A stretch of DNA of 64,000 nucleotides from Rhodosorus marinus CCMP1338. Taxonomy: Eukaryota; Plantae; Rhodophyta. Both the position numbers and the translations under genes were made by a program. Below, piece after piece: positions 15,149-64,000 of the stretch (positions are counted from its first letter, which is position 1; each line of letters opens with the position of its first letter). The stretch lies in assembly GCA_029953675.1 (NCBI GenBank), contig JAMWBK010000010.1, positions 1,240,001 to 1,304,000 of the forward strand. The letters are read 5' to 3'. The notes under the pieces were generated by a model. The model was not told the DNA's origin, made no database searches, and saw only the letters and a program-made list of their open reading frames with translations.

Positions 15149-18100
15149 ATGGGGAAGAGGAAGAGTGTGGTCTGGGAGGGCTTCAGGGATTTCATAGACG
15201 AGTTCGGGGCGACAAACTGTCAATGTCTGCGATGCGGGCAGCCTGCTTCTCGGCATACAAGACCCCTGAACAAGCATCAGGCTGCTTGCCGTGCTAGAGT
15301 CCCCTTGTCGAGATTCTCGGAGTCAAGTGCTGCTTCTACTGCGCCTGGGCGTTCGGAATCTGGTGTAGAGAGTTTCTCTGCAGGAGGCTGTCCCCTCCCG
15401 AAAGAAGCAGAATGAGAGATTCCAGTTGGCCTTGACAATGAGGAATGTTTCGTTTAGGTAAGCTTGCTTCAATCCTCACAAATTCTTAGCTCATACTTGG
15501 CAAATTCCGATACAGAGGGGGATAGCGCGGGGTTTGATTGTTGCGTTCTATCGGCTGAACCGGCTGCGTCCATTTCTGGGTGTAGTTTCGCAAACTCCCC
15601 TTAATTTCGGGAGTACGTAGCGGGTTTTCAGCTCGACGCGACGATACCGGATAGGCGTACAATCGCGAGTAGTATACTGGACAACCTTTTCGAAGGTTCA
15701 ACAGGAGTTTGGAGGCTTCCTGAACGGCTTCAAGAAGTGCACCATCGTCATGGATCGTTGGACAACGGTTGCTGGTGAGCTCGTCTTAGCATGGCCAGTG
15801 GTGACGGAAGACGGGCAAGTCCGTCTGCTGGACTTGTATTCCTCTCCTGTTACTGCGACAGGAGAGCAACTGTCGCAGGATATTCTCGAGAGAATCAGGC
15901 AGGTAGAGGGGATGTGTGCGGAGAAGTCTCTTTTCGGCCTGACGACCGATAATGCACCAGTGTGTGCAAACGCGAGGCGACTGGTCGTGGAGCCCTACGG
16001 AAAAGGTCTAATCGCAGGAAGGCAATTTATGCGCCAGGGATAGCATAGCTCCGTGCGTTCGTGCTTTGGCGCTTGTTTAGTCTTCGATTAAATTATGTTT
16101 AGAAAAGTATTGTTTCCGGCTACGTACATGTCGGTGGTCAACCTCGTTCTTATGGTGCTGGCTTATTACATGATGGCTAGTTCGTCCCCTCTTTGAGACG
16201 CTGGTGATATGTTCGTTACGTACATTTTGGATTCAGAATTGAGGTATTGAATTTGGATTTGTGTTCACATAGGTACTTGTTTGGCTCACCAGACCAACCT
16301 GCTTGTCAGAGACGTCATGGTCAAGGTAGGAAAGTTCGGAGAGATTTCGGACTAAAGCATTTCGCGTGGCGAAGATGATCCGAAGAAGCAGCGCTCTCCG
16401 GACGGACATTGCCACAAACACGCGGAGACAAGATCTTGCAGTGTGGCTGCCAACAGTCACCAGGTGGTACTCGCTAGCGGTAGTATTCGGGCAGCTGCGA
16501 AAGATAGGGGAAGGTATTAAATGCTCCGTCCTGAAGCAGAAATTCTAGAAGATGAAGTCCATGGAGAAGCTGAAGACAAGTAGCTTGGATGAACAGTTCT
16601 GGCGGGCCATGGACACAATGTGCCAGCTGGGTCAATCTCTGACTCCAAGCTTGGACGGAGACAAGAACGACTCATCCAGGCCACATAACACTCGCGTGGG
16701 CCTGGCCCTTCAACATCGTTGAGTCTGGTTCATTGCGAATCACGGACGAACAGCGATCGGGGCTAGTAGCGGTCCTCGAGCACGAGGTGAACGAGGTCGT
16801 AGGTGACATTCACTACTTCGCCTGGTGTCTGGATCCTCGTTTGAAGGGGAGTGGGCTGACCAACAAAACTCTGCTCCTAGTGCAATTCGGGATTCCGCTG
16901 TTCTATATGCAGTACGTCAACGCTGACATTACGCCGAGCCAAGCAGAAAACTTTCGTCTACAGTTCGGGGACTATATCGATGGGAATGGCGAAATAGGCT
17001 TGTTAAATGACTGATTCTGGCCCCCATTCACACATCGGAGCGCAGATGGCGAGTACGAGACCGACTGGCCCTGTTCTTGAAGGGAGACTTCGAAGTACTA
17101 CAGCGCAGCTATTTGGATTCGTCAGCACCATCCGCCCGTCGGACTCGGCATGGCACAGTGTCGCCCGTGCCGGCTCGAGTACAGAAATTGGTAGCAGTGG
17201 GCGATTTAAGTCGAGCGGCGCGGGTTTTGGAGGGCCAGGCGCCTGTCCTCCCCTACGATGATAGTCTCGCCCAGACGGTGTCGTCTTTGTTCCCTGAGTC
17301 CGACGTGGATTTGTCCCCTGAATTCGAGGTATTCTTGGACCGTCCGGAGTTGGCCAGGTTTCGCATCGATCTGACGCTCAGTGAGTCTGACCCGGAGGAT
17401 TTGCTTCGTACCTCGCGTCGGGGACGCTGTCCCGGACCCTCCGGACTAAGAACAGAGCTATTGCAGGCCCTGAGCCAGCCTGGCCAGAGCGCGCTTCTGA
17501 GGATCCTTAACAAGTTGTTCCAGGGCGTATCGGGTGCGTCTGCGCCATGGGAACATCTCCGGCAGGCACAGCTGTGCTTGCTCACGAAACCTGACCACCA
17601 GCCGGCCCACCCGCGTCTGCGGCCGATCGGGATGGTGGAGAGCCTACGGAAGTTAGCCGGGAGGTGGCTATGCCAGCGCCTTCGCCAGCGCGTCACAGCT
17701 TTTATGGCGCCCTTGCAAGTAGGGGTGGGATTTTCTGGGGTTGCGAACTGATCACCCATGGGATCGAGCTAGAACGCGCCAGTAGGCCGGAGTAGGGAGT
17801 CTTGGTGGTTGATTTCCGGAACGCATTCAACAGCGTGTCGCGGACGCATGCGCTAGAGGTGCTCCGACGTGTGTTTCCGGAGGCGTGGCCGTTTCTATCG
17901 GGTATTTACGGAGGGGAGAGCCTCCCCTACTTGACAACGGAGGGCACTGTTTTTCAAGCACATACTGGCGTCCAACAAGGCGACCCTTGCGGACCTCTTC
18001 TTCATGCCTGTGCCCTACAGCTCGTACTTTTACGTCTTTCGACTGAGGTCTCGGATCTTCGAATCTGCGCGTACCACGATGACGTAACATTGCTGGGCAC

Positions 18101-19990
18101 CCCTGACACCCTGGCTAGGGGACTGACCGCGATCGAAGCGATTGCACGTCGCGTCGGTTTGACTGTGGAAACAGAAAAATGTCGCTTTCTCCCCGCGAGG
18201 GACGTGTCGCTGAACTCTCTGCCACCCACTCTGCGACTAATCAGCGAACGTGAAGGGTTCGAACACCACGGCGTCGGATTGGGGACTGACAACTTTGTCC
18301 AAGCATCCTGCGAGCGAGTTTTGGCACGGCACAAGCAACTCACCGACGCCATTGAGCACCTACCCGACAGCATGCTGCAATCGGCCTCCTTGCTTTCCCG
18401 CTTTTGTGCCGGTCCCAGACTCAACTACTGGTTGCGCAGCCTGCCTCCAGCTTGGAGCTCGTGGATCGCGGCTAAAGCCGACGAAATGACCCTGCAACAC
18501 TGGGGAACGCTCTTGGATGAGCCCCTCGATCTTGAAGCTGCTCCCGACAGGGACTTAATTCGTGCACAGATCGCTCTACCGTTGCGATTAGGGGGATTCG
18601 GCGTCGCAGGCCGTGGGCTGGTATGCTCGCCAGCGGCGGTTGCCTCCTGGGCTACCGCGCTGCGAACGTTGGTGACCTTCCAGATGCGAAGTGCCTGCCT
18701 CTTGGCTCGAGCTTTGACCAACGAGGATCCAGTGACCCTGCCGCCCCCGCTTTTGACAATTTATGATGGTCTTCAACACGCGTTCAGGAGGTGCAACGCC
18801 GTGCCGGACGCAAATCGGTCCCGCTTTCGTTCCTGGAGGGAGCTGTTATGGGGACGAGCTGAAGCGATTGAGGATTGTCCCCTCGACCGAGTTCTTGCCG
18901 ATGACGGAGAGGCTAGCCCCGGGTCCCCTGTTGCAGACTACCCGGGTTTGAGCCGATTGTGGAGCTCCCGCACTGATGTGATTCAACATAGCCTCACCTG
19001 GGGCCAACACAGTGCCGCTCACACAGTCATGCTCAATTCTCCTCTCACGCCGCCTACCACTGCCGCTCGTCTCCGCGGCATGGGAGGCCACCTCTCGCAC
19101 TTGTGGTTAACCACTCTACCGTCGTCATTGAGTCATCGTCTCGATGCTTTCCAGTTCCGTTCTGCCGCACGGATCTATCTCGGTTTGCCACAGGCTCCGT
19201 GGCACTCTAATCGGCCGTCTTTCTGTCAGGGATGTGAGAGCCGGATTGACGCTTGTGGCTACCACTTCCTGGGTTCCTGCGGACTGTTGCGAGGTCTCCG
19301 TACGAGGCGTCACACTCGCCTCAAGTACATCCTCAGCGAATTTTTGACTCGGATAGGGCATACGGTTGAGGTTGAGTCGGAACTGCCCAGATCCATCTCG
19401 GACTCTGCACCGCCCCGTTGTATAGCCGATCTCCTCGTCTCCGACGCTGCTGCCAGACGCTCAACATATGTGGACCTTGCGATTACCTGCCTCGTGGCCA
19501 GCGCCCACCTCACCGCAGCCGCCCGCCGCCGGGGGGCCGCGGCTTCGGTGAGGTAGCCCTTCGAAGAGTTAAGGAACGACGGTATGCTGAGAGCATGGCC
19601 AGTCTGCCTTGCGCTGAGGGTCGCTCTCACCGGTTCCAGCCATTCATTGTGGAAAGCTTTGGTCACGTCGATAAGTCGGGTTTAGAGTGGTTGCGGAAAT
19701 GTTTTGCTGAGCATCCTACTGAATATTTGGCGCTCTTGAGGCGTTGAAGTGTCTCCCTTTGGCGATATTCCAGCCACATGCTTTCCGAGGCGCGCCATCG
19801 GCGCCTGGGGTTGCATGCTTCCCTCCCTAGTTATTAGTTCATCTTCACGCCTTGCGTAGCGCTTCAGGCTATGCTAGTAAAGTCCAGTCCAAATGACTAC
19901 GCTGGCGAAATAAACTCATTCGAGTATTGGCGAAACGCAGAGAGGCTTGGATGCAAAGAGTTGACCCAAGTTGCTCGATTCGGTCCGAGA
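15149..19990 (+). mobile_element. Degenerate hAT (BED zinc finger, DUF659-like) transposase gene with introns, split by a CRE insertion
   Basis: BED finger (VWEGF..CQCLRC..LNKHQAAC), PDRRTIASSILD, IVMDRWT, TDNAP, CLAHQTNLL, PTVTRWYS, AWCLDPRLKG. The frame resumes after the CRE as NDYAGEINSFEYWRNAE..ELTQVARF (dimerisation domain). Several in-frame stops. Confidence 0.85.
17013..19890 (+). mobile_element. CRE-clade non-LTR retrotransposon (RT plus CCHC plus restriction-like endonuclease), subfamily A, 8-bp TSD, inactivated
   Basis: RT motifs PGPSGL, LRPIG, QVGVG, VDFRNAFN, GVQQGDP, YHDD; zinc knuckle CQGC..HFLGSC; RH..L; IADLLV..YVDLAI; KERRY..FQPFIVESFG. TSD AAATGACT at 17005-17012 and 19891-19898. 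Frameshifts at ~17740 and ~19550; stops at 17793 and 19745. Confidence 0.95.
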
Positions 19991-35800: not shown

Positions 35801-38800
35801 TCGCCATTTGTACTCGATTCTCTCATCTCAACAGGTACTTGAAGAAGACGAGAAAGGAGAACCGGTCCTCGCGTCGTTGAGTGACGAGGAATTGCTGTGG
35901 CGGCTGAGAATGTTGGCGCAGGCATGTAGGTCCTGCGGAGATGTCAAGCCGTACTGCGATCGGCTAGTTTGCGCTTCGTTCTTGGCCATGCAAAAACCGT
36001 CGCGGTCCGTGTACAAAGCAGGAGGGCGTCTCCTACGAGGACTGTTGGAGGGTTTGACGGCTGGAAAGGTGGCATTTGGATCCGGCACTGGTGGAGAGGT
36101 AGAGGAGGGGAACGTGTACAATTTGGAGTGGCGAAAGCCGAGGGATGAAGAATGGGAGGCTGCTGAGGTAGTGCTGAGGAGGGCTCTCAACCTAGCAAAG
36201 GAGACGGTGACTGCCAACGGCAAAGTTGATCTGACCGACCGAGAGAAGGTTTTCAAGGCGTTGCGCATGCTGCACGCGACACAGCGTGGAGGCCGCTGGG
36301 TGTTGAGCGGGGCGCTCACAGAGAAGGCCAAAAATACTCGATGCAGAGAGGGCGAGCTTCTTTCGAAGAAGGACGCGAGGTATATTTTGACAAAGCCTCT
36401 CGCTGCTGGGCTCGGCGGAGAACTCGGAGGCAAGAGAGAGTCTGTCGCGAAGGAATTGTGGGCAGATATCTACTCGTTCATACTGGAGATCCTCGTGTGC
36501 GTGGAAGAGGAGAGGCCAAATGATAGTCTGCTTTTGTATAGGTGCTTGGAGCCTATAGAGTTGGCGCACGATCCGTTTAAGCGCTCCACTTCTGGTCGTA
36601 TGATAGCTCACTCCGCACGAGGCTACAAGAATGCGTATAAACCAGTTATGGAAATGAAGCGTAGTTTCCGCGCAGAGGGTGGTGCGGGACGTATGGTCCC
36701 TGGATTCATCATGAAGCTTCGTGTGGAGGCACTTCATGAGCTCCGCCTCAGCCTTGGCGCGCAGGGAGGCTACGACTGCGAAGAGGTATATGTCGATGTC
36801 CTCGAAGGGCTGAAAAGACTGGCGGTGAACGATTTCCCAAAAGTTCGGGACGAGGCACGAGGAGCCCTCACGAGGGCACTTCGGGTATGCAAACCACAAC
36901 AGCGGAAAGTGACAATGACGAAGTTCATCGAGGTGCTCGACAAGTCAGCAGTGCGGGGTCCGAACGGAACCTGTGACTATGAGCGGATGATGGGTTCCGC
37001 AGATGTGCTGAGGGCGTCTATGGTGAACCAGCATATAATGCGAGATTGGAGTTTGCTGCGTCCAGTTGCTCTTGCAAGTCTGCGTGCTCTGATGGTTTCG
37101 GAGAGACCTGATGCCGCGATGGAAGTCAATGCCTTATACGCCAAATTGGCCGCGTGTCTACGTCCAATTGGGATCGAACCTCTGCAGATTTTAAACTCGA
37201 AACTGGACGGAGTGGATGAGAGTTCGAGCAATGACTTGTCGACTGCGCAACTGCACGAGTTTCTCGAGTTGAACAAGTCGCTTTTGACTATGGTGAATAC
37301 GTCGAATGGGAATGGGGTCGACCCAGGTCCAGCGCCAGGAATAGAAGGGCATTGGAAGCTCAAAAGCCTCGTAGCCACGACGTTGTATACCAACCTTCGA
37401 TTTGCACATCCTCCCGCTTCGGAAGTGGCGAAATTCTTTGCTGAGAGCATGGGATCGGATCTGATGGCTCTGAGGCAGGTTTCTAAGAAGGCGATGTCCT
37501 TGCTACTTGCATTCCAAAAGCGCAGGATAGAGAAGGATGAGGGTGATCGCGAAGTTTTGTCCGCTATTGAAGGCGTGCTTTCTGAAGATTTCATAGACCG
37601 TCTGTTGCGCGTACTTGCACTTGACGAAGGACTGGATATTTCCGAGAGCGGTGATACCGATGGCTTTTTCGGAGCCTTGTCACTCACGTCGTTGTCAAAG
37701 CATTGTGACGGAGATGCGTGTTGGGCTCTCGTTGGTGGTCGTCCGTGGCCTTCGTCCTGGGTCGCTAGATCGCGAGACACGTTGAGCTTAACCAGAGTGC
37801 GGTTGATGGAAATCATTTTTTCTACGTTTGGTTCTCCTATGCTCCGAAACTTCAGCGCCGCTGTGAGCGCGTTAATCAGCAGCGAAGACCCGATTCCCGG
37901 TGTCACGAAGGAAAACTCCCGGGTTTTTGCAGCAGAAGTAGTAGCAGGAATCGCTAGGGGAATGCGGATGGAGCATTCCGAAAAGGAACGGAACGCGACG
38001 GAAAGCGATATCAATGCCGTGAGCTCCTGGGCTAAGGAACTGCTTGGAGCGTTCTCCGGGCACGAGGGAATGGTGAATGGAGGTACCTTGATCCGTTTCT
38101 TTGTGTCGGGAGAGGAAGGCACAGTTGCAAGAAGCGTCGCGAAGCTTGTTAGGTCGGAACTTTTCGAATCGCCAATTGTTGATCTTGAGGCTCCTGCACA
38201 TTCTCAAGCGCGACGACTTCGATATCTTCACGCCAGTATTGCTGATGAGGAACCATCGTTTTCTGACGTAAGCACTTCTTTCCGTACGTGAAACGGCAAT
38301 GACGATACCCTAACCCCGCCTTTTCCTCTGCTTCACAGGCCCCGCTTGATAAGGCGATATCGGAGCTGACGGAGCCCCACGTTTTCTCTCATCCACTGAA
38401 GCACGTACGAGAGGAGATTGCTCGCTGTATGGCACTTCTTTCCTCATTCACTTCAGAGTCCATCGGAGAGACCTACGGGCAAAAGATTGAACAAGTTGCT
38501 GGAAGGCTTAAAGTTCAGACCAAGGAGGACGAGCTCGAGATATCTGAGGAAGACAAAAAACAGAGGTACGTCCAATCGTCATGAGTCGGTGGTTTGCATG
38601 GACCTCTTCTCACTGATTCTCGTACGTCAAAACGGTAGGTCAAGGGAGAATGATACTTTGTCAAGATGGGTATCTGTGGTACACTGGAACGGGGATACTC
38701 ATTCTTTTGGGGAGTTCTTGACAAAGCTTCTTCCAAGCTTGTTCGCCTGCCTGGATGACAGTGACCCGGAAAGGGTGAGTCGCCTATATCCTTTTTTTAG

Positions 38801-51078: not shown

Positions 51079-53038
51079 TCACGGATTTGTCGTTGCCTGC
51101 CTCTTTTTTGCAAGTTGCTTCCACATCTCAGCTTCACTCAGCTCCTCCACCTCCTCCGCTTCCAGGTCTACGCGGATAGTTTTCAGCTTCTTACTTAAGG
51201 CTGTTGGAACTGCGGCAGCGATATAGGTTCCTTCAGCCAAGTACTGTTCGTATTCTATTGCTCCTTGGGTGTAGATTTCGTTCATAATGTCTCCCCGATC
51301 ATACGGAACAATTACTTCCACGTCGGTCATGAGCTCCGTAAGGACGAGACCAATCTCCGCTACGAGGTTTTCCAATCCTGAGGATTCGGGAAGGTTTGCT
51401 AAGGTTCAAACTGAAATACCTGAAAACCAATTTCATCAGTATTCACGAACCTTGTTTTTCCTTCGCCGACACTGCGATAGTATGCTCTCTTTCCACGGCA
51501 GCCAGCGATACATCTTCAAGTGACTCCTCCACCAGATCAAGCTTGTTCCACACGGTGATTGTTGGTTTATGTCCAGCGCCTAAGTCCTCAAGCACGGAAT
51601 CGACAGTCTCCTCGTGGGCTTCTCTCATAGGGTTCGAATAGTCGACGACATGGATGACGACATCCGCCTCCACGACCTCCTCCAAAGTGGCTCGGAATGC
51701 CGCGATCAGCTGCGTTGGCAGTTTTTGAATGAATCCCACAGTATCTGTACTTCGCACGGAACAAATCGTAGTTAGTACAATAAAGTAGCGCCGAAAAACT
51801 GCGGATTCGTCGAAAATCAACGCACCCGTTATAAGAACCTCTGGGTGAACGGCCATCTCCGGTAACTGTGCACGACGAGTGGTTGGATCCAACGTCGCAA
51901 AAAGCATGTCTTCTGCGAAAATTGTGGACGTTGTGAGCGCATTCACCAATGTGCTTTTTCCGGCATTCGTATATCCAACAACACTGACAGTTGGTATATC
52001 CATCTTCTTTCTAGAGTTACGTTGCCTCTTCCGATGAGCCCTGTGCGTTAGAAAGGTGGTCCCAACGTAACACTTTAGAACATCGGAAGGAAATCGGAAA
52101 TGCAATAGCCAATGAGGACCATGGACAATTCTGTTTGCATACCGAACGGATTCCAATGTTCTTCTAAGTGCCGAAATCTTCTCATTAATTATTCGCCTGC
52201 GAAAGCACAAAAAAATTGAGCTTGAGCGTCGTTACCCATCTTCAGATGTCCGACAAACTCCTGTCACCTCACCTGTCTGATTCAAGCTGGGTTTCTCCCG
52301 GCCCTCGCAACCCCACACCACCCTGCCCAGATTGTCTTTCCAGATGGGTCCACAGCCTGGTCAACCGCGGCAATCTGTATTGGTACAGGGCCAGCTCCAC
52401 CTGCAGCTGACCCTCGCGTGTCCGTGCGTGCTGAGCGAAAATATCGAGAATGAGGGCGGTTCTGTCCAACACTTTGATGCCTGGAAAAAGTCCGAATTTA
52501 GCCCCCGTCATTGGTACGTGGCACTGAAAGCTACGAAAAATGCCTTTTTCCTATCCTTCGCCTTACCTGCTTGTTCTCCTCCGAACGCTCTTTCCAGAGT
52601 GCGTTGCTGCGCGGGGGAAAGCTCATCGTCCAGCACGCACGTTTTCGCTCCAGTCGCAGCCATCGCCGTTTTCACTTCTCTGACTTTTCCGGAACCGATA
52701 TAAGTTGAAGTAACCGGAGCGCTCAACTTTTGAGTGTTAGACCCAACCACCTCCATCCCAGCGGTTTCCGCCAACTGTCCCAACTCCTCAAGAGACTCAT
52801 CAATCGAGAACATGGACCGATCTCTTGGAAAGTCGACCCCTACCAAATAACACTTCTCCGTGGGCTGAGTTTCCCGTCTCATATCCTCTTCTTCCTTGGT
52901 ACCATAGCCCATCAGAACACACCTCCTTCTCTCCCATTTTACGACCCGGCATTCCGCAGAATCAACATCCAACGAAGTCGAAGACCCTCGTCTGACTGGG
53001 CACCAACCCAGACCACCAACAAAACAAACACCAGACAT
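51079..53038 (-). CDS. hflX: Plastid GTPase HflX, multi-exon
   Basis: [94 protein letters not shown]; transit-like N-terminus. Confidence 0.95.
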
Positions 53039-54362: not shown

Positions 54363-57300
54363 ATGCCTCAGAAATCAAACCGTCCGTGGTTTTACATCGT
54401 GACGTGTGACTCTTTCGGAAACAAGCAGGATATGTTTCACGTCGTGAAATTTGATGTGACGCCGGATTCTGATGAAGTTCCACGTCAAGATGCACAGCAT
54501 CTTCTAGAGAATTGGGGATTAAAACGGGTTTCCAAGCTCTCAAGTTGAAGGACGAACGGTTTGATATTTGCTCCAAATCAAGCTGTATGATTCGAGCAAG
54601 GAGACCGCGGTTTTTGTATTCAACTTGGGAATTCCTTTGCAGTCGGGTCCCGGAACCAAGGCATATCAGTTTGTTCGTATAGACTGGACTAGTTACTGGG
54701 AGTCTACTCACAGGGCAGCTCTTGAGAATGGATCACTGCAAACTGAAGCATCCGAACGAAGAAGCCGTCACTTTGGAAGGCCCCGCCGGCGTGTTTTGCG
54801 TAACATGCTCAAGAAACATGCTCACCGACGAGTATGCGCTTTCATCAATAAAGGTTGGTACGGCGACGAAATTGAAGCTGGTGAGTTGTGAAACATCGGT
54901 CAGGGAGTAGACTCCATTCTTGTCCATCGGGCTCGGCTGCAGCTGAACAAGAATGTTTTGAAAGGGAATATCTAGGAACGCCGAGAAGCTTCGAGGTTTC
55001 CTGGAAGGAAATCCCGAGGCTCTGCGACGTTTGTTTTGCTCGCTAACCACAGCGCAGATCCAGGCTGCAGGAAACTTGGACCAGGAACTGTCCACTTTGA
55101 CAACTGACATACAGGTACGGCCACCCGAACCCTCTTTCAACCGAAACATTCGTCCCGCTGAAGTAGGTGCTGGGAAGGTGTGGTTGGCGTTTTCCAGTAC
55201 TGGGTCATGGGTAGCTGAATGCTGTCAGCTGCTGTTGGTTTCACTACGGGACATAGGCGTAGATGCGACAGGCTTCGCTCAGATTCTCCTAGTTCTTGTC
55301 AGCATCGTGGACGAGGCAGAAAATTTGACCGTTGACCTGAGTGAAATTCTGTCCCTCATTGCTTCAGAGGTTGGCGCCCCTCTGCGAGATGCGATGTCGA
55401 AGCGGTTAGCTAGAAAATCCTCTGAGCTGGTTTCAAGATGTTTCATTCTGCTGTCAAAAGTGTTTGACAAACTTGCTCAAGCCGAAAAGGATCAGGTCAT
55501 TCTGGTGCTTTGCGAGTTGATCAAGCCCAGTTGCCCGGGTTTGTTGCCTTTCCGTTTGGTTGTTTTCATATTACAAGTCGTTTCGTATGGATCGCGACTG
55601 AAGCGACTCCTGATGCTTATATGCATGTTCAGATCATATCCGAATCGATGTTCTCTCCGCGCTCCTCGAAGGCCTACAGAGGCAAAGTTTGGTTCCGAGC
55701 AAGCACCATACCGAGCTCCTGGAGTCCTTCAAGCTCAGCCTAATGGCTGAAGACAGGACTGTTCGCAACCTCACCTGTGCTTCTTTAGAGGTCCTCGTCC
55801 TTCTTGACGAATACGCGCTTAAAACTTTGGAGTGCGGCCTGATCGACTACTTGTATGAGGTCATCAGGCAATCTGGAGAGCTTAAGGATGGACGGGACAG
55901 TGACTGTCTCTCCTGGTTGCTGAACATTCTGTATTCACTGGCCCATCATTTGCCTTTCAAGACTACTCTAGCCTATGGAATGCGCATCCTCCTGCAACAG
56001 ATGAGCCAAGTGGGTGCAGTGCACGCTGGACCTCTGTTGCGGTTGCTGGACCAGTGTCTTTCTTTTCCGGCATCCGAAACTTTCGAAGACCGAGACGCGA
56101 AATTTTACTTGGAATCTCTTCGAAGGATTTCCGATGAGCACTCGATCGTCGTCGATTGTGCTGGGTTGAGCGGACTGGTGGAGTGGTTTCGCCTCTCTCC
56201 AGAACTTATTGAGAACGTCGTACACGTTGTAGCAGATTCTGCCGCGCATGCGAAGGAATTCCCGAGCTTTTTGCACCCGATGCACACGATGAGATTGATT
56301 CTCTCGAAGCAGCTTCAAGAAGCTGAGCGAATGGACGAGAGGCTCAGGTCCAAGTTGCTTTCCTGCACTCTGGAGAGTTTGCTCCCTGTGAGCGCTTGCG
56401 TGACGTATCCACAGGATCTGTCATCTGCGGGCGACGTTTGGATAGAGGTGTTTGGCCTTGCAGCATTGGCAATGGACCCGGACATTCATGATGACGAGGC
56501 TTCTCTGCACCGTACTGGTGTTCATTGTCAACGTACGATATCGTTGACCAAAGTATTTGAGGTGCTTGAGAGAAACTCGAAAAACCTCTCGCTGGTGGGA
56601 ACGGGTCGGGAATTCTTGAGAAGCGTTGCAGTTGCCGTTCATCCGCTGTCCAAAGGGATCAAGCTCCTTAACTCGGAAATTCCCGGAACGAAATTGGAGT
56701 TGATCACCGGCGTAGAGTGCGGTTCAGCCGAGTGTTGTCTCGTTTTCTTGCTAAGCGAATATGAATCCGGTCAAGACTTCCCCGACGTCGAGGACGTCTT
56801 TTGCCGCGTGGCCAAATGCCTTAGCGTCAGGTCCGTATCCACTGCGCGGGAGCGATTCTGGCAGCTGCGAGTGCTCTGCCTTTGTCAGCAGAAAATGAGG
56901 TGCACTGCAGATACCCTTGCCAGCGGAGGTGACAGGCTACCCCGAGCGTTGTTTCTCGACATGTTGTCCTATGTTCCTACATCAGATGACGTCAATCCAG
57001 AGGTGGACACGGGGGTTTTGAGCTGGTTTCTTGCACAAGTGGAAAAACTGGAAGAACTCTACGTTATTGTTAATCTTTTCTGCAGACATAAGTTCTCGCA
57101 AATCAGCCGGCGCACGTTGCTTCTGGATTCACTGTGTAGCCGAACCGCGGCTGACTTGGGACTTGTAGAGGGTTTGTTGAAAACTGTTGCGAACAACAAG
57201 CCCTCCGAGATTGTCCCCGTCGCACTGGAAATGGCAACGCGATCAGTTGACTTCTCGGCAGCCGTCTTGAAGGTTGATGTGAACGTGACCTTCCTTTCTA

Positions 57301-58058
57301 CAGAGCGGTTCGTCAACTTTTACCTCCGTGCTTGGCTTCGTAGCGGTGTGGAAGATCTGGATGAATTCCCTCCGCGGCAAGCGCTCGGTTTCCTATTAGG
57401 AACCATGCAGAGGGACGGTGTACATGAGGGTGGAGTAAAGTTTTTGAGGGAATTCTGCAGACAGGCAAATATTCCGGGCAAAGTTTCTCCAGGGACCTCA
57501 GCGTCGATCAAGTTCTTGAGGACTCATGAGTTCATCTTGAGCTTGATCAGACAAGTACGAACGGATGCGCAGCAAAATCACTACCCACGCTTAGGACCAC
57601 ATGAGATGACTGGAAACATTCAGGCGGAGGTGTTACGTCTATTCTCGCATATACCAGAACTCGACCGAGAATTGTTCAGCTCCCCTGCCGAATGGGCTGA
57701 TAGAATAATGATTGAGTTTGAAAGGGGTCAGTACACAACTCTTGAGGCCGTTTTGGAGCTCATGTCTGCATCGACAAGCTTCCACAGCGAATTCAATCCA
57801 ACATCCAGGATGTTGGTTCTCATGGTGGCCAATTTATGCGCATCCGGTAAGCGACATCCAGCAAGCTATCGCTGTTTTGCCCGTCGGATACCAATTCTCA
57901 CGACGGCCACGTAAACAGACAATTTCAGGCTGAGCGCAGCAGCCAAATTCGCGATGGACAGGCTCACATCCTACTGGCCAGAAGCAAACCTTCTGACCTC
58001 GTGCACCACCGCAGCTCGCTTCTACATCCCGTACGAGACCTCGACGATATCTGAGTAG
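54363..58058 (+). CDS. Large hypothetical protein: possible ubiquitin-like segment followed by a long leucine-rich alpha-helical (ARM/HEAT-like) region; 5' exons unresolved (may begin ~53.5 kb)
   Basis: Long ORFs of 239 and 741 aa join in frame through an intron at ~55540-55632. The last exon after a GTAAG..AAACAG intron ends ..YETSTISE* at 58058. No family is recognised. Confidence 0.7.
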
Positions 58059-59232
58059 CGCAATCCCAGTTGAAGACTACCGACCTCTGTACAATCGATG
58101 ACAGCAACGGTCCAGATACCTGCGCTCAGCTCATTCCAACCGAAACTCTCACGGAGAGCAAGGGTCTTTATTGGTAGATCAGGATACACAAGCACTCTTG
58201 GGCTTATGAAAGAAAGCTCTTACGTCCAGTTAGGATCATAGGCAGAGCAACTTTGTCCATACCACATTCCAGTCAACAGTCAGAACAATACTAACCCTCC
58301 CACGATGATCAATCAATGAATCCTGCCATAGTATTTTCAAAAAAAAGAGCTATCTTCGATATCGACAATTAAGTAATAATAAAAAGAGACCAAGTCTCTA
58401 AAACCCTCATCAACAGTAAAAAAAAGCTAAAGTTTTGCGTACATCTTTCCCCCCCCCCCTCCTCCCCCTGGTTCATTTTCTTTTGATCTGTCAGAAACCC
58501 AAAACCCGGCCTCAAAAATTCGCAAATATAATAAAAGTTGTGAAGATATGGGTTTGTTGATAGTGAAGATTAGATTTCTGGTCGTTGCATAGAGAGGGGA
58601 AAACGATGGGGATCGGAAAAAGAAAAAAAAACACGGGGTTTTTGATAGGTGACGTCATTGTTGACCGAAACGGGAAAAAGTGATCACTAACATCTTTTTT
58701 TGGCCGATGTTGTTGTTGTTGTTGTTCGCCATCCTTGTTTTTCTTTTTTTTTGGTATTGTTTTGTTGGCCAAAAACGTTCCAAAGGAAACCTTCCTGAAT
58801 TTTGTTTTAGGCGGAGGTGGTCTACGTCTTTTAGAGGGATTTTCTAGTATCTAAACTGTTTGAGAATAGGGGGGGAAATTGTGATCTTATGTTTGGGGTA
58901 CAAAGCTGGGCATCAACGTGTTGAAGGTGAGCTTGAAGCTGTTTGGGAGAGTTTACTGAAGGGATTTGGGAGGAGGAGTTAGTTGATGCGCTCAGAGGAG
59001 GAGGAATAGGAGAATTCTCTCGTCCTTCTTTGTCTTGAAGTTTTCGTAGTGAGTTTTGCGGGAGTGTGTTTTGTGTTTTTTGTTGGCGTTTGCCTATGCT
59101 GTGATTTTTGTTCTCTCCGACCCTTTAAGAAGGAAGGTCTTTCCATTTTGGAGGGTGAGTGGTTGGAATCCGATTTAATTCCCGACTTTGTTGGGAAGTA
59201 GCCTTAAGTATCTCACCTTATTTCGCCTCAAG

Positions 59233-61681
59233 ATGGGAAACAAGGCAAGTGGTGTCAGGAAGGGTAGGACCAGCACATTCTCCGTGAACTTGTCTGTTCT
59301 TTGCTGTAGTTTTTTGGATCTGTTCGACGCTTCCTGGGCGTATTTGCTGACCATGTGGTCTGTATTCCTTCGTTACAGTTTTTAAGAAGAAAACGCCCGA
59401 GAAGGAGGATACAAACGCAAGTACGACAAGGGCGACCCCAGCACCCTCGAAACCCGCTCAGACAGCTGGTACGGCCGGAGCGAGTGCCAGTGCTACAGTA
59501 AAGAACAAATTAAAGCCTATTTTCAAAGAAGAGAAGCCGGAAAAGCCGCCGACTGAAGATGAGAAACTTGGACTGCGACATATTGACTTTATCAATGTAC
59601 ATCGGAAGGACTATACGGGGAGAATTGAACTGCTTCAGGGCAGAGTGGAGAAACTATCAAAGGCTGATGAAACGGACCTACTTATCGTGTACCTATCTGA
59701 GAGGGGATCATACAAAGGGAATCGGGATTCGGCTCTTGCAGGGCTGAACAGGTGTGGTATTTCGCTTGAGCAGCTGGAGAAAGAGACAAAACCTCAGCCG
59801 AGCTACAGAAAACATTATCACTGTTGGTTGTCTCGGCAGATCAGTAGACCACGGCCACCAGGGTTCGAATACAAAAGACTGCTTGTGTACGAGGACCCCG
59901 GCGAGGAACTCACGCAGGATGACAACATCGTCCTCGACATTATGAACTGCATGACAACAGTTATTGGAGGTGACATTCAGATTGCTTCGGTCATGCTCCC
60001 ACTGTCGGGAGCACTGCTCTCTCCTTCGTTGAGGAAGCATTTTGTGCAAGCTGCAATCAAAGTCACGTACGCGTGGATGATGATGGGTTTACCGCTAAGG
60101 ATTGTGAAGATTCTGCTTCCTGATTCCGACATTTCTCGTGACATAGAAGTTTTCCAGCATACAAAGGAAAAGCTCTTACGTTCCAGCTCGCTGCCTGCCT
60201 CGCTGAACGAGTATGACGTCTTCATGAGTTATTCAGCCGCCGAGAAAGCGGCTGCAGAGCGGATGATAAGCACGCTGAGGTCGAAAGCTCCTGGTATTCG
60301 AATCTACGATGCTGAGGCCAGGGACGTCAAGGTACGAGACAGGGGTATTGTTCACCAGCCAGTAATGGAGGCAATTAGCAAGTCGAGGTTCTTCCTACCG
60401 CTTCTCTCGGACAGCTTCTTTAATGCAGTTGAATGCACGGAGGCATTTTCTTTGGCCTATTGTCGTGATTTTGACTTGCAAGGGAACTTTATCATTCCGC
60501 TGTACTGGAGGAACTGTGACCTGACGCCTATGGCGAGAAGATTGGTGGCAACGGAAGGAGTGGATTGTCGAGAGGCGTCGTTTGAAGCTGCCTACCCAAT
60601 TTTGGAAGAAATCCTGCGCGCAGTGAAGCAAGCCGATCGCCATGGCCCCACAGAGATAACACATGACGCTATTGAGGGAACGCAGCCCGCAGAGATGCAG
60701 CTCGCGGATGCACTTCTCATGAAACGGAAGAAGATGGAGGAACACAGCATGATTTTTGAGCCGACCGACCGGGACAACAAGACCTATGGATTTTTGGACA
60801 AGAGTTGGATAGATGAGTGGTCCATTGACTTTAAGGCTCTCATTTTCGGGGCGCGGATCGGTGCAGGAGGATTCGGTGAGGTGTACAAGGGCAAGTTTAA
60901 GGACGACATGGTTGCGGTGAAGACGCTACAGAGAGTTGAAGATGATGAACCCAAGGATGTTGTTAAGGAATTCATGGTAGAAATGAAGTTGATGTCGGGG
61001 CTTGTTCACTCGAACATCGTTAAGTTTATTGGAGCAGCTGTAGAACCTCCAAATCTTGCCATTGTTCTAGAGTTTATGCAGGGCGGTTCGCTCTACCGTG
61101 CTATTCACCGTCGAAGAAGGAACATGATGGGCGCGTTTCCTTTGCTGAAAGCGACGTGGATTGCTTATGGTGTGGCTAAGGGAATGGAATACTTGCACTC
61201 GCAGTACCCGGTTATAATTCATCGAGATTTGAAATCACCAAATATTCTTCTCGGCAGTAACGTACACCAGGTGAAGGTTTCAGATTTCGGCTTGTCGCGA
61301 CTGCGAGTTTCTACGTACGTTAAGACGGGCCCTGGTGGAACTCCAGAGTGGATGGCACCGGAACTCCTTCGCCAAGAGAAATTTGACGAATCGTCGGACG
61401 TCTTTTCTTTTGGTGTCGTCTTGTGGGAGTTACTAACATGTGAAAAACCGTGGAAAGATGAACACCCAATGCAAATTGTATTTAAGGTTGGTTCTCGCGG
61501 CGAGAAACTAGTTCTTCCGCCCACCGTGCAAGCGCCTCCGGAGTTCAAGGATATGATAAACTCGTGCTTCAACGATAAGCCCGCTCGAAGGCCCCAATTT
61601 TCTAGCCTGGTCAAGTCGCTTGAGTTCATCCTGCGCAAGATTGAGGCCCAGCGAGCCGCCGCCGAGAATGCTGACAAATAG
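59233..61681 (+). CDS. N-myristoylated (macro-like)-TIR-Raf/TKL protein kinase, 2 exons
   Basis: MGNKAS start; a phase-1 intron joins into the 678-aa ORF frame. TIR: YDVFMSYS..IYD..AISKSRFFLPLLS..FIIPLYW. Kinase: IGAGGFGEVYKG, VAVK, HRDLKSPNILL, DFGLSR, GTPEWMAPE, DVFSFGVVLWEL. Confidence 0.93.
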
Positions 61682-62130: not shown

Positions 62131-64000
62131 TCACAGCACCTTCAGTATCCTCCGCATATCTTGATTCACGGAAAATCCTCTGTCCTTGAAAGCCTTGGAT
62201 GACAAAAACTCTCCGGTGTTCGTAATTCCCATCTCACGGGCTCGCGCGTTGAAGTCGGCTAGATCAATTTCTACGTTCACTTCGCCGCTGTCGTGCGTGA
62301 CTGTACCGTGAGAAGTCAAGTAGTCTCTGACCAATCTACTGACAAGATAGAACAGTAGCTCGAAATCATTCCGATAGTACGTTAAGTACTTGAAGAATTT
62401 ACGCTTGAGGCCTCTCATGACAGAGAATTTCTGGCTCTGGAAGAAGGACTCCAGCATCACGCTAATCGCAACGTTCACGTCATCGTCTCTGACGTAGCTG
62501 CGCAGATGCATCCTCGCTCGGGCTTCCGACATACGGACGATAGACTCCAGGTGCCTTAACGCGATCGGCATTCCTCCACTGCTCAGTGACTCACGCCGAA
62601 GATCGATGTACAGGCGGCTGATTTTCTCGTGGTCTACGTTCCCGAATCGGGGGGACGCGGTGCGGCGGGCAAAGATGAGATACTTCCTCAGCAGGTCCTG
62701 CGGAATCAACTCGACGTTGGTCTCAGACATGACCTAAGGGAGGAACGCATTACAAACTGGCTTAGAGACTCACAAGTTCCACGAAAGATAAAAATCGAAG
62801 GTTCTATGAAATCACGCACCGGCGCCTCGTTTGCTTCAGCGAGCTTGGATGTTCTAGACTCCGACGGATGAGACGAACTGTGCGAATTGACAACGAATCG
62901 TGCGAGGTTCTCATCAACCAGGGGATCAACTGCATCTCGGACTACGCAAAGGACGTCGAATCTCGACAGAATCGGCTCGGTCAAGTCCACGTTCTCGGAG
63001 AAGCTTACGCTGGAGTCGTACCGTCCTTTCACAGGGTTTGCCGCGGCAATAACGGAGCACCTTGCCTGTAGCGTTGTGACAATGCCAGCTTTGGAAATGG
63101 AGATCGTTTGCTGTTCCATTGCCTCATGGATTGAAGTTCGATCTTGATCATTCATCTTATCGAACTCATCGATCAAGCAGGTTCCCCTGTCCGCCAAGAC
63201 AAGCGCACCACCTTCAAGAACCCACTCCCCTGAAACCGCATCTTTGCGAACCGCAGCTGTCAACCCCACGGCAGAAGCTCCCTTGCCGGTGGTATAGACC
63301 GCTCTGTTTGCAGTCTTCTCAACGTACTTGAGGAACTGGGATTTGGCAGTTCCTGGATCACCCAGCAGCAGAACGTTGATGTCTCCTCGAATGCGATGCT
63401 TCTCTCCGACTTCCTTCGCTTGTCCACCGAACAAACTCAACGCAATAGCTGTCTTGATGTCCTTGTGGCCATAGATTGAAGGTGCCATGGACGCAATGAT
63501 CCTGTCCGCAATCTTCGGGTCCTGGGACAGTTTCCTCAGCTCAAAGATCTCATCATCAGTCAAATCTTCCGTAACGTCCGACTCATCCATCTTTCGGACG
63601 TAGTTTGCTCGAATAACCGTCGAGAAAACGGGGAAACCATTCTTGATGTTGAGGCTGATATCTGGGCAATGGGTATAGACCCCGGTGACTTCGACTGCAT
63701 CACCCGGACGAGCACAATCAATCAAGTCGGCTGTGATCATGACGTCCTTCTGCCTGGGCAATCGACCGGCTGGCACACTTCCGGGGCTCTCTTGTATCGT
63801 CATTCTCTGGAAGTTATCGAAGACCGTTTGCTCGGCGTTGACCTTGAAGGGCCCACGAGATCCACACTCGCTGCACTGTGAAACTGCCTTCTCCGGTCTC
63901 GCTCCTGCGACTCCTGTTGGGACTTGAACAGCTCCGCATCTTTGGCAATCCAACTTGACGATCTTCATATGCGGAAACACTCCAGTTCTTCTCGTAACCA
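62131..64000 (-). CDS. MCM2: DNA replication licensing factor MCM2 (3' part; 5' end outside window)
   Basis: [106 protein letters not shown]; intron at ~62735-62815. Confidence 0.97.

Follow-up and report, generated by a model that had tools for sequence, protein, structure and literature searches.

A 64,000-nt window of the genome of Rhodosorus marinus CCMP1338 (contig JAMWBK010000010.1, positions 1,240,001 to 1,304,000, forward strand) contains, at 59233-61681 (+), a two-exon gene for a 777-residue protein in which a divergent macro-fold domain, a TIR domain, and a CTR1/Raf-like protein kinase domain follow a candidate N-myristoylation motif. Coordinates refer to the whole window, and residue numbers refer to the spliced product. 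The regulatory half of the protein has lost the hallmark residues of enzymatic TIR domains and of canonical macro domains. We propose, with a probability of about 0.5, that the protein is a membrane-tethered Raf-like mitogen-activated protein kinase (MAPK) kinase kinase (MAPKKK) controlled by a non-enzymatic, domesticated macro-TIR module. A first-pass annotation of the window had described the overall architecture (myristoylation motif and basic patch, alpha/beta domain, TIR domain, and CTR1-like kinase), which Pfam and PDB matches confirm; the macro identity, the inheritance of macro and TIR domains as a cassette, and the losses of hallmark residues are new here.

Gene model, kinase domain, and N-terminus

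The gene fills exactly the interval that had been assigned to it, with an ATG at 59233 and a TAG stop at 61679-61681. Translation of the unspliced sequence from 59233 meets a stop after 50 codons, and one intron is therefore required. Exon 1 (59233..59263, +) comprises the start codon, the residues MGNKASGVRK, and the first base of codon 11, and holds the N-myristoylation motif (Gly2, Ser6). A 115-nt, phase-1 GT-AG intron (59264..59378, +; GTAGGA...TTACAG) joins the MGNKAS exon to the long open reading frame (ORF), and exon 2 (59379..61681, +) supplies the remaining coding sequence, including the TAG stop. The long ORF called mechanically begins at 59645, in a frame that is open upstream to 59351. 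The acceptor is TTACAG/TT at 59378/59379; several phase-1 GT donors lie near the ATG, and only the donor after 59263 (AAGG/GTAGGA) reproduces the database proteins. Donors at 59249 or 59252 were rejected, since the donor at 59264 yields the annotated and transcript-derived protein.

The spliced product is identical at every residue to P0045 (KAJ8901911.1, 'hypothetical protein NDN08_004115 [Rhodosorus marinus]'), and the organism, suspected from the sequence to be a red alga, is indeed one, a member of the Stylonematophyceae. Transcriptome-derived proteins of other Rhodosorus strains are collinear with the product at 94-97% identity and carry MGNKASG[VI]RKVF[KR]KK across the splice junction; the gene is expressed in these related strains. 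A second R. marinus paralogue, outside the window (P0047, KAJ8907411.1, NDN08_007523; 815 residues), is 59% identical. A third sequence, P0035, is a partial transcript under the name Rhodosorus marinus; it is more distant, at 55% identity. Like the second paralogue, it retains the TIR motif ECTEAF.

The kinase domain (aa 496-754; 60833..61609, +) matches Pfam PK_Tyr_Ser-Thr with an E-value of 1e-60 and contains all of the kinase motifs: GAGGFG, VAVK (K525), E545, HRDLKSPN (625-632), DFG (646-648), and TPEWMAPE. In a PDB sequence comparison, the nearest solved structure is Arabidopsis CTR1 (231 bits, E 2e-67), followed by MLK (MLK1), DLK, ZAK, RAF, and TAK1 at about 140-170 bits. The domain is preceded by a variable linker (aa 426-495; 60623..60832, +; 31% mean pairwise identity over aa 426-494) that ends in a conserved pre-kinase segment, W..W..DF, with conserved residues F482, F483, D484, W487, W491, and F495. 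As judged from these matches, the domain is a Raf-like, CTR1/EDR1-type kinase of the tyrosine kinase-like (TKL) group with a full set of catalytic motifs, in agreement with the first-pass annotation. Pfam detects no EDR1/CTR1-type N-terminal domain (PF14381) on the protein, so that the CTR1-like kinase domain sits in a different protein family. Separately, the PADLOC model 'mad6' (a bacterial methylation-associated defence kinase) matches window positions 60716-61654 (aa 457-769) at 277 bits, spanning the kinase and about 40 preceding residues; Pfam kinase models score 206 bits and CTR1 scores 231 bits (phmmer). The mad6 score suggests that some bacterial defence kinases are TKL/Raf-like.

The protein begins MGNKASGVRKVFKKK, with Met-Gly, small or uncharged residues at positions 3 and 6-7, Ser6, and a nearby basic cluster. 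Specifically, the segment MGNKASG conforms to the pattern G-{EDRKHPFYW}-x(2)-[STAGCN]-{P} for N-myristoylation, KVFKKK comes next, and the basic patch, read from the sequence as FKKKTP (aa 12-17; 59381..59398, +), lies directly after the motif; the myristoylation signal and basic patch of the earlier description are both present. An MG[NT]xx[ST] start, usually followed by Arg/Lys-rich stretches, occurs in 17 gene models of the family, among them every complete transcript-derived ORF. Examples are MGNRGS in the second Rhodosorus paralogue, MGNGISS in Gracilaria domingensis, and MGTVLST in Porphyra umbilicalis; basic clusters follow the MG start in orthologues P0027, P0038, P0039, and P0012. The remaining family models probably miss a tiny first exon. 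We infer that the kinase is probably held at the membrane by an N-terminal myristate and the basic patch. A low-complexity spacer (aa 18-71; 59399..59560, +), with 16% mean pairwise identity among orthologues and no invariant column, separates the basic patch from the macro domain.

A macro-TIR cassette that has lost its hallmark residues

The segment after the spacer (aa 72-262; 59561..60133, +) had been described as an alpha/beta domain of about 190 residues; the domain is real, and its macro identity, missed in that description, emerges from an AlphaFold2 (AF2) model, Foldseek, and a broad family profile. A Pfam scan of the whole protein, run to E<=1, has no match in aa 1-286. The AF2 model of the region, built from 15 orthologues, has a predicted local distance difference test score (pLDDT) of 74 and a predicted template modelling score (pTM) of 0.77. 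Foldseek comparison of the model with the PDB returns macrodomains with a probability of 1.00, E-values of about 1e-7, and template modelling (TM) scores of 0.6-0.69, including macroH2A, PARP9, PARP14, Af1521, and YmdB. All informative matches are macrodomains, the exceptions being crystals of macro-carrier fusions and a few weak fold neighbours lower down, which excludes a SLOG, Sir2, or second-TIR identity.

Sequence profiles give a mixed picture. A red-algal-only macro profile returned only noise from the PDB (DUF6832, E 1.7). The profile broadened with distant relatives returned Af1521 first (E 0.008), followed by PARP14, YmdB, MacroD2, and alphavirus nsP3 macrodomains, and it aligns the family GDLT with GDIT of Af1521, and AMPLLATG.QG with AFPAVSAGIYG. 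A weak Pfam Macro match (PF01661) is present in 2 of 28 relatives, an NCBIfam PRK00431 match (E 0.002) is present in one relative, and the JGI name of one relative is 'O-acetyl-ADP-ribose deacetylase'. By the AF2 model and Foldseek, with support from the broadened profile, aa 72-262 is a divergent macro fold, of three layers (alpha/beta/alpha). The macro fold usually binds ADP-ribose.

Conservation within the protein peaks in the macro domain, where 65/191 columns are invariant. Across 32 orthologues, pairwise identity averages 79% for the macro domain, 74% for the TIR domain, and 75% for the kinase domain, as compared to 16-40% for the linkers and N-terminal spacer; sequence comparison shows all three domains to be under strong purifying selection. 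The motif GD[LI]T, the Asp of which contacts adenine in canonical macrodomains and is kept in prokaryote-type and animal relatives, is replaced by QGRVEKL in the window protein and by QG[SAR]VE in orthologues. The Gly-rich diphosphate loop (N-x6-GGG) is missing throughout the cassette family (VSAFP.DY.P...SLIGAL / VYL..RG.YK.N.DSALAALNR), and the window protein lacks the canonical residues for binding or hydrolysing ADP-ribose. The invariant residues cluster in VYL..RG.YK.N.DS.LA.LNR, KPQPSYRRHYHCWLS, YEDPG, and PLSGALLSP, stretches that, from the alignment to macrodomains, would form loops of the ligand cleft.

The middle region (aa 287-425; 60206..60622, +), read as a bacterial-type TIR domain in the first-pass annotation, does score as TIR: aa 287-410 match Pfam TIR_2 (PF13676) at 38.5 bits, above the gathering cut-off of 28, with an E-value of 1.9e-9, and all orthologues carry PF13676. 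A profile of the TIR region of the family matches Cat1, TLR2, RUN1, AT1G72930, MyD88, L6, and other TIR domains in the PDB. The top 46 PDB matches of a TIR-only AF2 model in Foldseek are all TIR domains, with E-values of 7e-5 to 8e-3 and TM scores up to 0.68; the comparison includes PDB 7s2z, which is RUN1 E100A. These matches indicate a flavodoxin-like TIR fold. The model is of low confidence (mean pLDDT 62) and was not used for residue-level arguments.

As the criterion for an enzymatic TIR domain, of the kind found in SARM1, plant TNL proteins, ThsB, and AbTir, we used the Glu at the start of alphaC (RUN1 E100, SARM1 E642), a position that here lies three residues after a conserved Cys. Gap-free alignments to RUN1, AT1G72930, Cat1, and TLR2 place Ala366 at the position of RUN1 E100 (WCLDEL); the codons of Glu365-Ala366, in the motif ECTEAF, are at 60440..60445 (+). 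For residue counts, every cassette TIR was aligned to one hidden Markov model (HMM), giving 49 kinase-fused red-algal TIRs and 104 others, with the Galdieria TIR outside the alignment. Glu occupies the canonical position in 0/49 members of the kinase-fused family (Ala 41, Leu 4, Ser 3, Thr 1) and in 92/104 macro-TIR proteins outside the family. Substitution of this Glu by Ala abolishes NADase activity in SARM1 and in plant TIRs. The red-algal macro-TIR module has most likely lost NADase activity.

A search of 1.84 billion representative proteins with the macro HMM yielded 242 matches at E<=1e-3, and nearly all of these, fragments aside, have TIR_2 directly C-terminal to the macro domain. Most homologues come from metagenome or SRA assemblies, and prokaryotic taxa were taken from record names. 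The typical macro-TIR protein has about 340 residues and is common in bacteria and archaea; named carriers are Pyrinomonadaceae, Coleofasciculus, Prochloraceae, Alphaproteobacteria, Zoogloea, and the archaeon Methanocrinis, and the gene neighbourhoods are prokaryotic. Certain motifs are common to the red-algal and prokaryote-type proteins, [FY][SH]CWLS in the macro domain and, read by eye, DCRE near the TIR C-terminus, which argues that macro and TIR were inherited together. On these comparisons, macro plus TIR is an ancient two-domain cassette, mainly prokaryotic, that is inherited as a unit. A PADLOC search with the macro-TIR half gave only a weak PDC-S66 TIR match.

The cassette has been joined to other domains more than once. 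Three proteins (P0076, P0078, P0092) have an N-terminal Ser/Thr kinase fused to the cassette, in the order opposite to the red-algal one, which suggests that a kinase joined the cassette independently; the gene for P0076 (locus L004) adjoins an insertion sequence (IS)-type transposase. Other N-terminal partners are an Hsp70-type ATPase (P0071, P0093, P0143), NUDIX (P0087), and patatin (P0227), and P0065, P0067, and P0075 are TIR-macro-TIR proteins. Both hallmarks, the TIR Glu and the macro GD[LI]T, are intact in the prokaryotic fusions to kinase, Hsp70, and NUDIX. The cassette thus appears to be a mobile unit joined to varied N-terminal domains in metagenomic, presumably prokaryotic, proteins, and the NUDIX partner would fit an ADP-ribose-type chemistry. 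Our literature search found no description of kinase, Hsp70, NUDIX, patatin, or TIR fusions of the cassette. Marine invertebrates have macro-TIR proteins with one to three TIRs: P0074 (Antedon mediterranea), P0096/P0330 (Lingula anatina), and P0107 (Pecten maximus); the UniRef name of the Lingula protein is 'ADP-ribosyl cyclase/cyclic ADP-ribose hydrolase'.

Apart from divergent long versions, the order with a C-terminal CTR1-like kinase was confined to the red-algal family in a macro-profile search that would miss TIR-kinases lacking this macro domain. The divergent long versions are Galdieria sulphuraria XP_005703471.1 and intron-less metagenomic contigs that are probably cyanidialean. The family is present in Stylonematophyceae, Florideophyceae, and Bangiophyceae, with the divergent form in Cyanidiophyceae, and is low-copy, with one to three genes per genome (two paralogues in the Rhodosorus genome and two such genes in Pyropia). 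The first-pass annotation had called a TIR-Raf fusion in a red alga unknown and had asked whether the architecture was already widespread and characterised. The fusion is not new to databases: it is pan-red-algal, with public orthologues in Chondrus, Gracilaria, Porphyra, and Galdieria annotated as Ser/Thr kinases; database entries of the family bear the names 'Ser/Thr protein kinase', 'EDR1', or 'hypothetical protein', and two 'TIR+Pkinase' genes, py01330.t1 and py08661.t1, were listed in 2019 in a table of R-protein candidates of Pyropia yezoensis (Tang et al. 2019, PMC6928737). These Pyropia genes are presumably orthologous to the window gene. 'TIR-Pkinase' is also a rare class in angiosperm R-gene censuses (PMC4234491). 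The literature search turned up neither a functional characterisation nor any paper that recognises, in this family, the residue losses, the macro domain, or the cassette.

Candidate control of the kinase by the macro-TIR module

In the mechanism that we propose, the regulatory half of the protein would derive from an ancient, mainly prokaryotic conflict module of NAD/ADP-ribose type, and the red-algal cassette would no longer make or cleave nucleotides and would instead have a regulatory and assembly role. Specifically, the TIR domain would associate with copies of itself or with another TIR protein; the highly conserved macro cleft would bind a ligand or partner; clustering at the membrane, on an input that may be biotic or abiotic stress, would bring kinase domains together for trans-autophosphorylation; and the activated kinase would signal into a MAPK cascade. 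The loss of both the canonical TIR Glu and the macro 'GD' Asp makes it most likely that the making and cleaving of nucleotides are gone. TIR domains signal by self-association, and those without the catalytic Glu, such as MyD88, serve as assembly scaffolds. Kinases of the Raf/CTR1 class are activated by dimerisation, proximity, and trans-phosphorylation. The first-pass suggestion that TIR oligomerisation activates the kinase, with no need for TIR enzymology, fits the loss of the canonical Glu.

Several points weigh against this mechanism. The equivalent of the Raf dimer-interface Arg (BRAF R509; 'RLRH' in CTR1) is Val here and Ser in the paralogue, and side-to-side Raf dimerisation is therefore not assured; Arg is present in most orthologues (by eye), and we dropped the residue as support for dimerisation since it is Val here and the position varies in the family. 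The myristoylation signal is a motif-level prediction. The second half of the TIR model is poor (pLDDT 41-52 per 10-residue block, residues 71-130), and the structure would allow a locally shifted TIR active site that uses the conserved Glu365. The strong conservation of the macro cleft loops could likewise reflect nucleotide binding that has been retained, or catalysis of another kind. The sole expression support for an immune link is a 1.5-1.6-fold induction of a Pyropia gene that is a presumed orthologue, and the literature search found no functional study of the macro-TIR-kinase family.

One possible alternative is that the protein is a housekeeping or abiotic-stress MAPKKK without an immune link, with the macro-TIR half serving as a lineage-specific docking domain, like the EDR1-type N-terminal region of CTR1. 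Consistent with this, the family has one to three copies per genome, is very highly conserved across the red-algal radiation, unlike fast-evolving immune receptors, and has no LRR, WD40, or NB-ARC sensor domain by Pfam; the response to infection, by Pythium porphyrae, is confined to one of the two Pyropia genes and to the small induction cited above (PMC6928737). However, TIR domains and the prokaryotic relatives of the cassette are overwhelmingly tied to conflict systems, and the immune hubs MyD88 and IRAK also evolve slowly, so that conservation is compatible with an immune role. Low copy number and very high conservation together argue for a signalling hub rather than an arms-race receptor. 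The first-pass proposal of an innate immune or stress signalling module therefore stands in part: the immune role is weakly supported, and the gene, low-copy and strongly conserved, is unlike an arms-race receptor.

Rather doubtful is a reading in which the protein is a receptor kinase, its catalytically dead macro-TIR half sensing ADP-ribose-type molecules or NAD+ status produced by other enzymes and relaying them to a MAPK cascade; the nucleotides could come, on the same tentative footing, from stand-alone TIR/NB-ARC proteins of the alga, from PARPs, or from microbes. In an explicit and equally doubtful version, an NAD+-derived messenger from invading microbes, or from TIR or NADase enzymes elsewhere, would be bound by the conserved macro cleft, the dead TIR serving both as co-sensor and as oligomeriser, and would directly activate the MAPK cascade at the membrane. 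The macro fold with its strongly conserved cleft is consistent with such sensing, red algae have other TIR proteins (for example, TIR-NBARC-WD40 in Chondrus, PMC9806590), and inactive members of the TIR class have been proposed as nucleotide sensors (PMC9503650). On the other side, the Gly-rich diphosphate loop is absent across the cassette family, and the adenine-contacting Asp is absent in the red-algal branch. If true, a nucleotide-signal receptor kinase would be a third independent decoder of TIR-type small-molecule signals, beside EDS1 heterodimers and ThsA-type effectors.

It is unlikely that the TIR domain is still an enzyme, acting through Glu365 or a non-canonical site, with its product read by the macro domain in cis or in trans to switch the kinase on. 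Glu365, one position before the canonical site, is conserved in 45/49 family TIRs, the loops equivalent to the macro cleft do not vary and contain many Arg, His, and Tyr residues (SYRRHYHCWLS), and prokaryote-type relatives, including the NUDIX fusion, keep both hallmarks; moreover, type II Thoeris provides a precedent for the sensing of TIR products by macro domains (PMC11204291; bioRxiv 10.1101/2024.01.03.573942). However, the canonical Glu is missing in 49/49, and the neighbouring acid is no replacement for it: Glu or Asp is present there in 91/104 of the other cassette TIRs, coexisting with the catalytic Glu in active-looking relatives, which makes Glu365 ancestral and not a compensatory shift. 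The acid at this position is absent in divergent, presumably cyanidialean, metagenome versions, and Galdieria, by eye, has Met there; the divergent long kinase-fused metagenome versions have no acidic residue at either position, and Galdieria, by eye, is apparently the same. Glu365 as a shifted catalytic residue is thus disfavoured, and the loss of the adenine-contacting macro Asp also counts against an enzyme with its own reader. Finally, that two or three neighbouring genes have been misread as one polypeptide is effectively refuted, for although exon 1 is only 31 nt and many automatic orthologue models begin elsewhere, macro, TIR, and kinase lie in one unbroken 2.3-kb ORF, independent transcriptome assemblies yield the same full-length protein, and >30 orthologues have the identical architecture, so that a chimeric gene model is ruled out by the continuous ORF and transcript support.

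No immune signalling module is shared more widely among living organisms than the TIR domain, yet its known outputs are few: death-domain adaptors and IRAK in animals, NAD-derived messengers and EDS1 in plants, and ThsA-type effectors in bacteria. The ancestry of the macro-TIR half shifts the mechanistic picture for the red-algal family towards NAD/ADP-ribose-type signalling, and the family would be a natural one-chain coupling of macro and TIR to a Raf-like MAPKKK, in organisms in which signalling and immunity are almost unstudied. The series from an enzyme-competent prokaryotic cassette, through independent kinase, Hsp70, and NUDIX fusions, to a catalytically stripped and constrained red-algal version could reveal how enzymes of conflict systems are domesticated into eukaryotic signalling scaffolds. 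The analysis also flags an unannotated macro-domain family for databases and a candidate hub of stress or disease signalling in cultivated red algae (Pyropia/Neopyropia, Gracilaria, Chondrus).

Genomic setting and comparison with known systems

The kinase gene lies tail-to-tail with an MCM2-type replication helicase gene (62131-63980, -) that reaches the window end. The MCM_OB and P-loop part of the latter (62706-63980) and its lid and winged-helix part (62131-62730) are in two overlapping ORFs of different frames, which implies that a short intron, or else a frameshift, lies around 62706-62730. The kinase gene is immediately preceded by a 741-aa ORF (55689-57914, +) that, like an 827-aa ORF at 35808-38291 (+), has no Pfam match at E<=1e-3. 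A (TTG)n/T-rich simple repeat at 58700-58760, about 500 bp upstream of the kinase start codon, lies in the putative promoter or 5' untranslated region, and its minus-strand poly-Gln ORF is probably meaningless. Farther away, a 255-aa ORF (51443-52210, -) has an MMR_HSR1-type GTPase domain match, and a 584-aa ORF (17802-19556, +), which matches reverse transcriptase (RVT_1) in part and lies where the G+C content is raised (0.55-0.58 at 16-20 kb), is probably a retroelement remnant.

Among known kinases, the CTR1/EDR1 Raf-like MAPKKKs are the closest. They share with the window protein HRDLKSPN, GTPEWMAPE, an activation-loop Ser/Thr pattern like that of CTR1, a large N-terminal regulatory region, and action at the membrane, which for the window protein is predicted. 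The regulatory half of the window protein is, however, macro plus TIR, with no EDR1/CTR1 N-terminal domain detected, and its predicted membrane contact is by myristate and basic patch and not by receptor binding.

The true homologues of the regulatory half are the prokaryote-type macro-TIR proteins of about 340 residues (Coleofasciculus, Pyrinomonadaceae, Zoogloea, Methanocrinis), which have the same domain order and for which we found no characterisation. They differ in keeping the Glu (92/104) and GD[LI]T and in having no C-terminal kinase; in the prokaryotic kinase-fused relatives P0076, P0078, and P0092, the kinase is N-terminal and of a different Pkinase type. The invertebrate macro-TIR proteins (Antedon, Lingula, Pecten) also have macro followed by TIR, and their macro-adjacent TIR likewise lacks the canonical Glu (EQ/EK, with Gln or Lys), whereas they keep GDIT, have no kinase, and have extra TIRs in both scanned cases (Antedon, Pecten). 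The Pyropia yezoensis genes py01330.t1 and py08661.t1 have the Pfam architecture of the window protein in another red alga and exist as table entries, with the macro domain unrecognised and no residue analysis or functional work.

Type II Thoeris also pairs TIR (ThsB) with macro (ThsA, macro-transmembrane), and in that system the macro domain receives the signal that the TIR makes (PMC11204291; bioRxiv 10.1101/2024.01.03.573942). In Thoeris, there are two operon proteins, an active TIR, and a membrane effector; in the red-algal protein, there are one chain, a Glu-less TIR, and a eukaryotic kinase output. The NCBIfam and PADLOC Thoeris models matched only the generic TIR part of the prokaryotic relatives, far below cut-off (41 vs 220 bits), and, on these scores, the window gene is not a Thoeris system.

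The TLR/MyD88-IRAK (Pelle) pathway offers a parallel in operation, a non-enzymatic TIR coupled to a TKL-group kinase by induced proximity, as we propose for the red-algal protein. In particular, the alphaC-region motif of MyD88, SDDYLQSKEC, resembles the family motif SDDY..S.EC (SDDYFHSVEC), and both are without the catalytic Glu. In animals, however, TIR and kinase are on separate proteins bridged by death domains, whereas the red-algal protein is fused, has no death domain, and has a kinase that is Raf/CTR1-like and not IRAK-like. The resemblance is, by this comparison, a functional analogy and not orthology.

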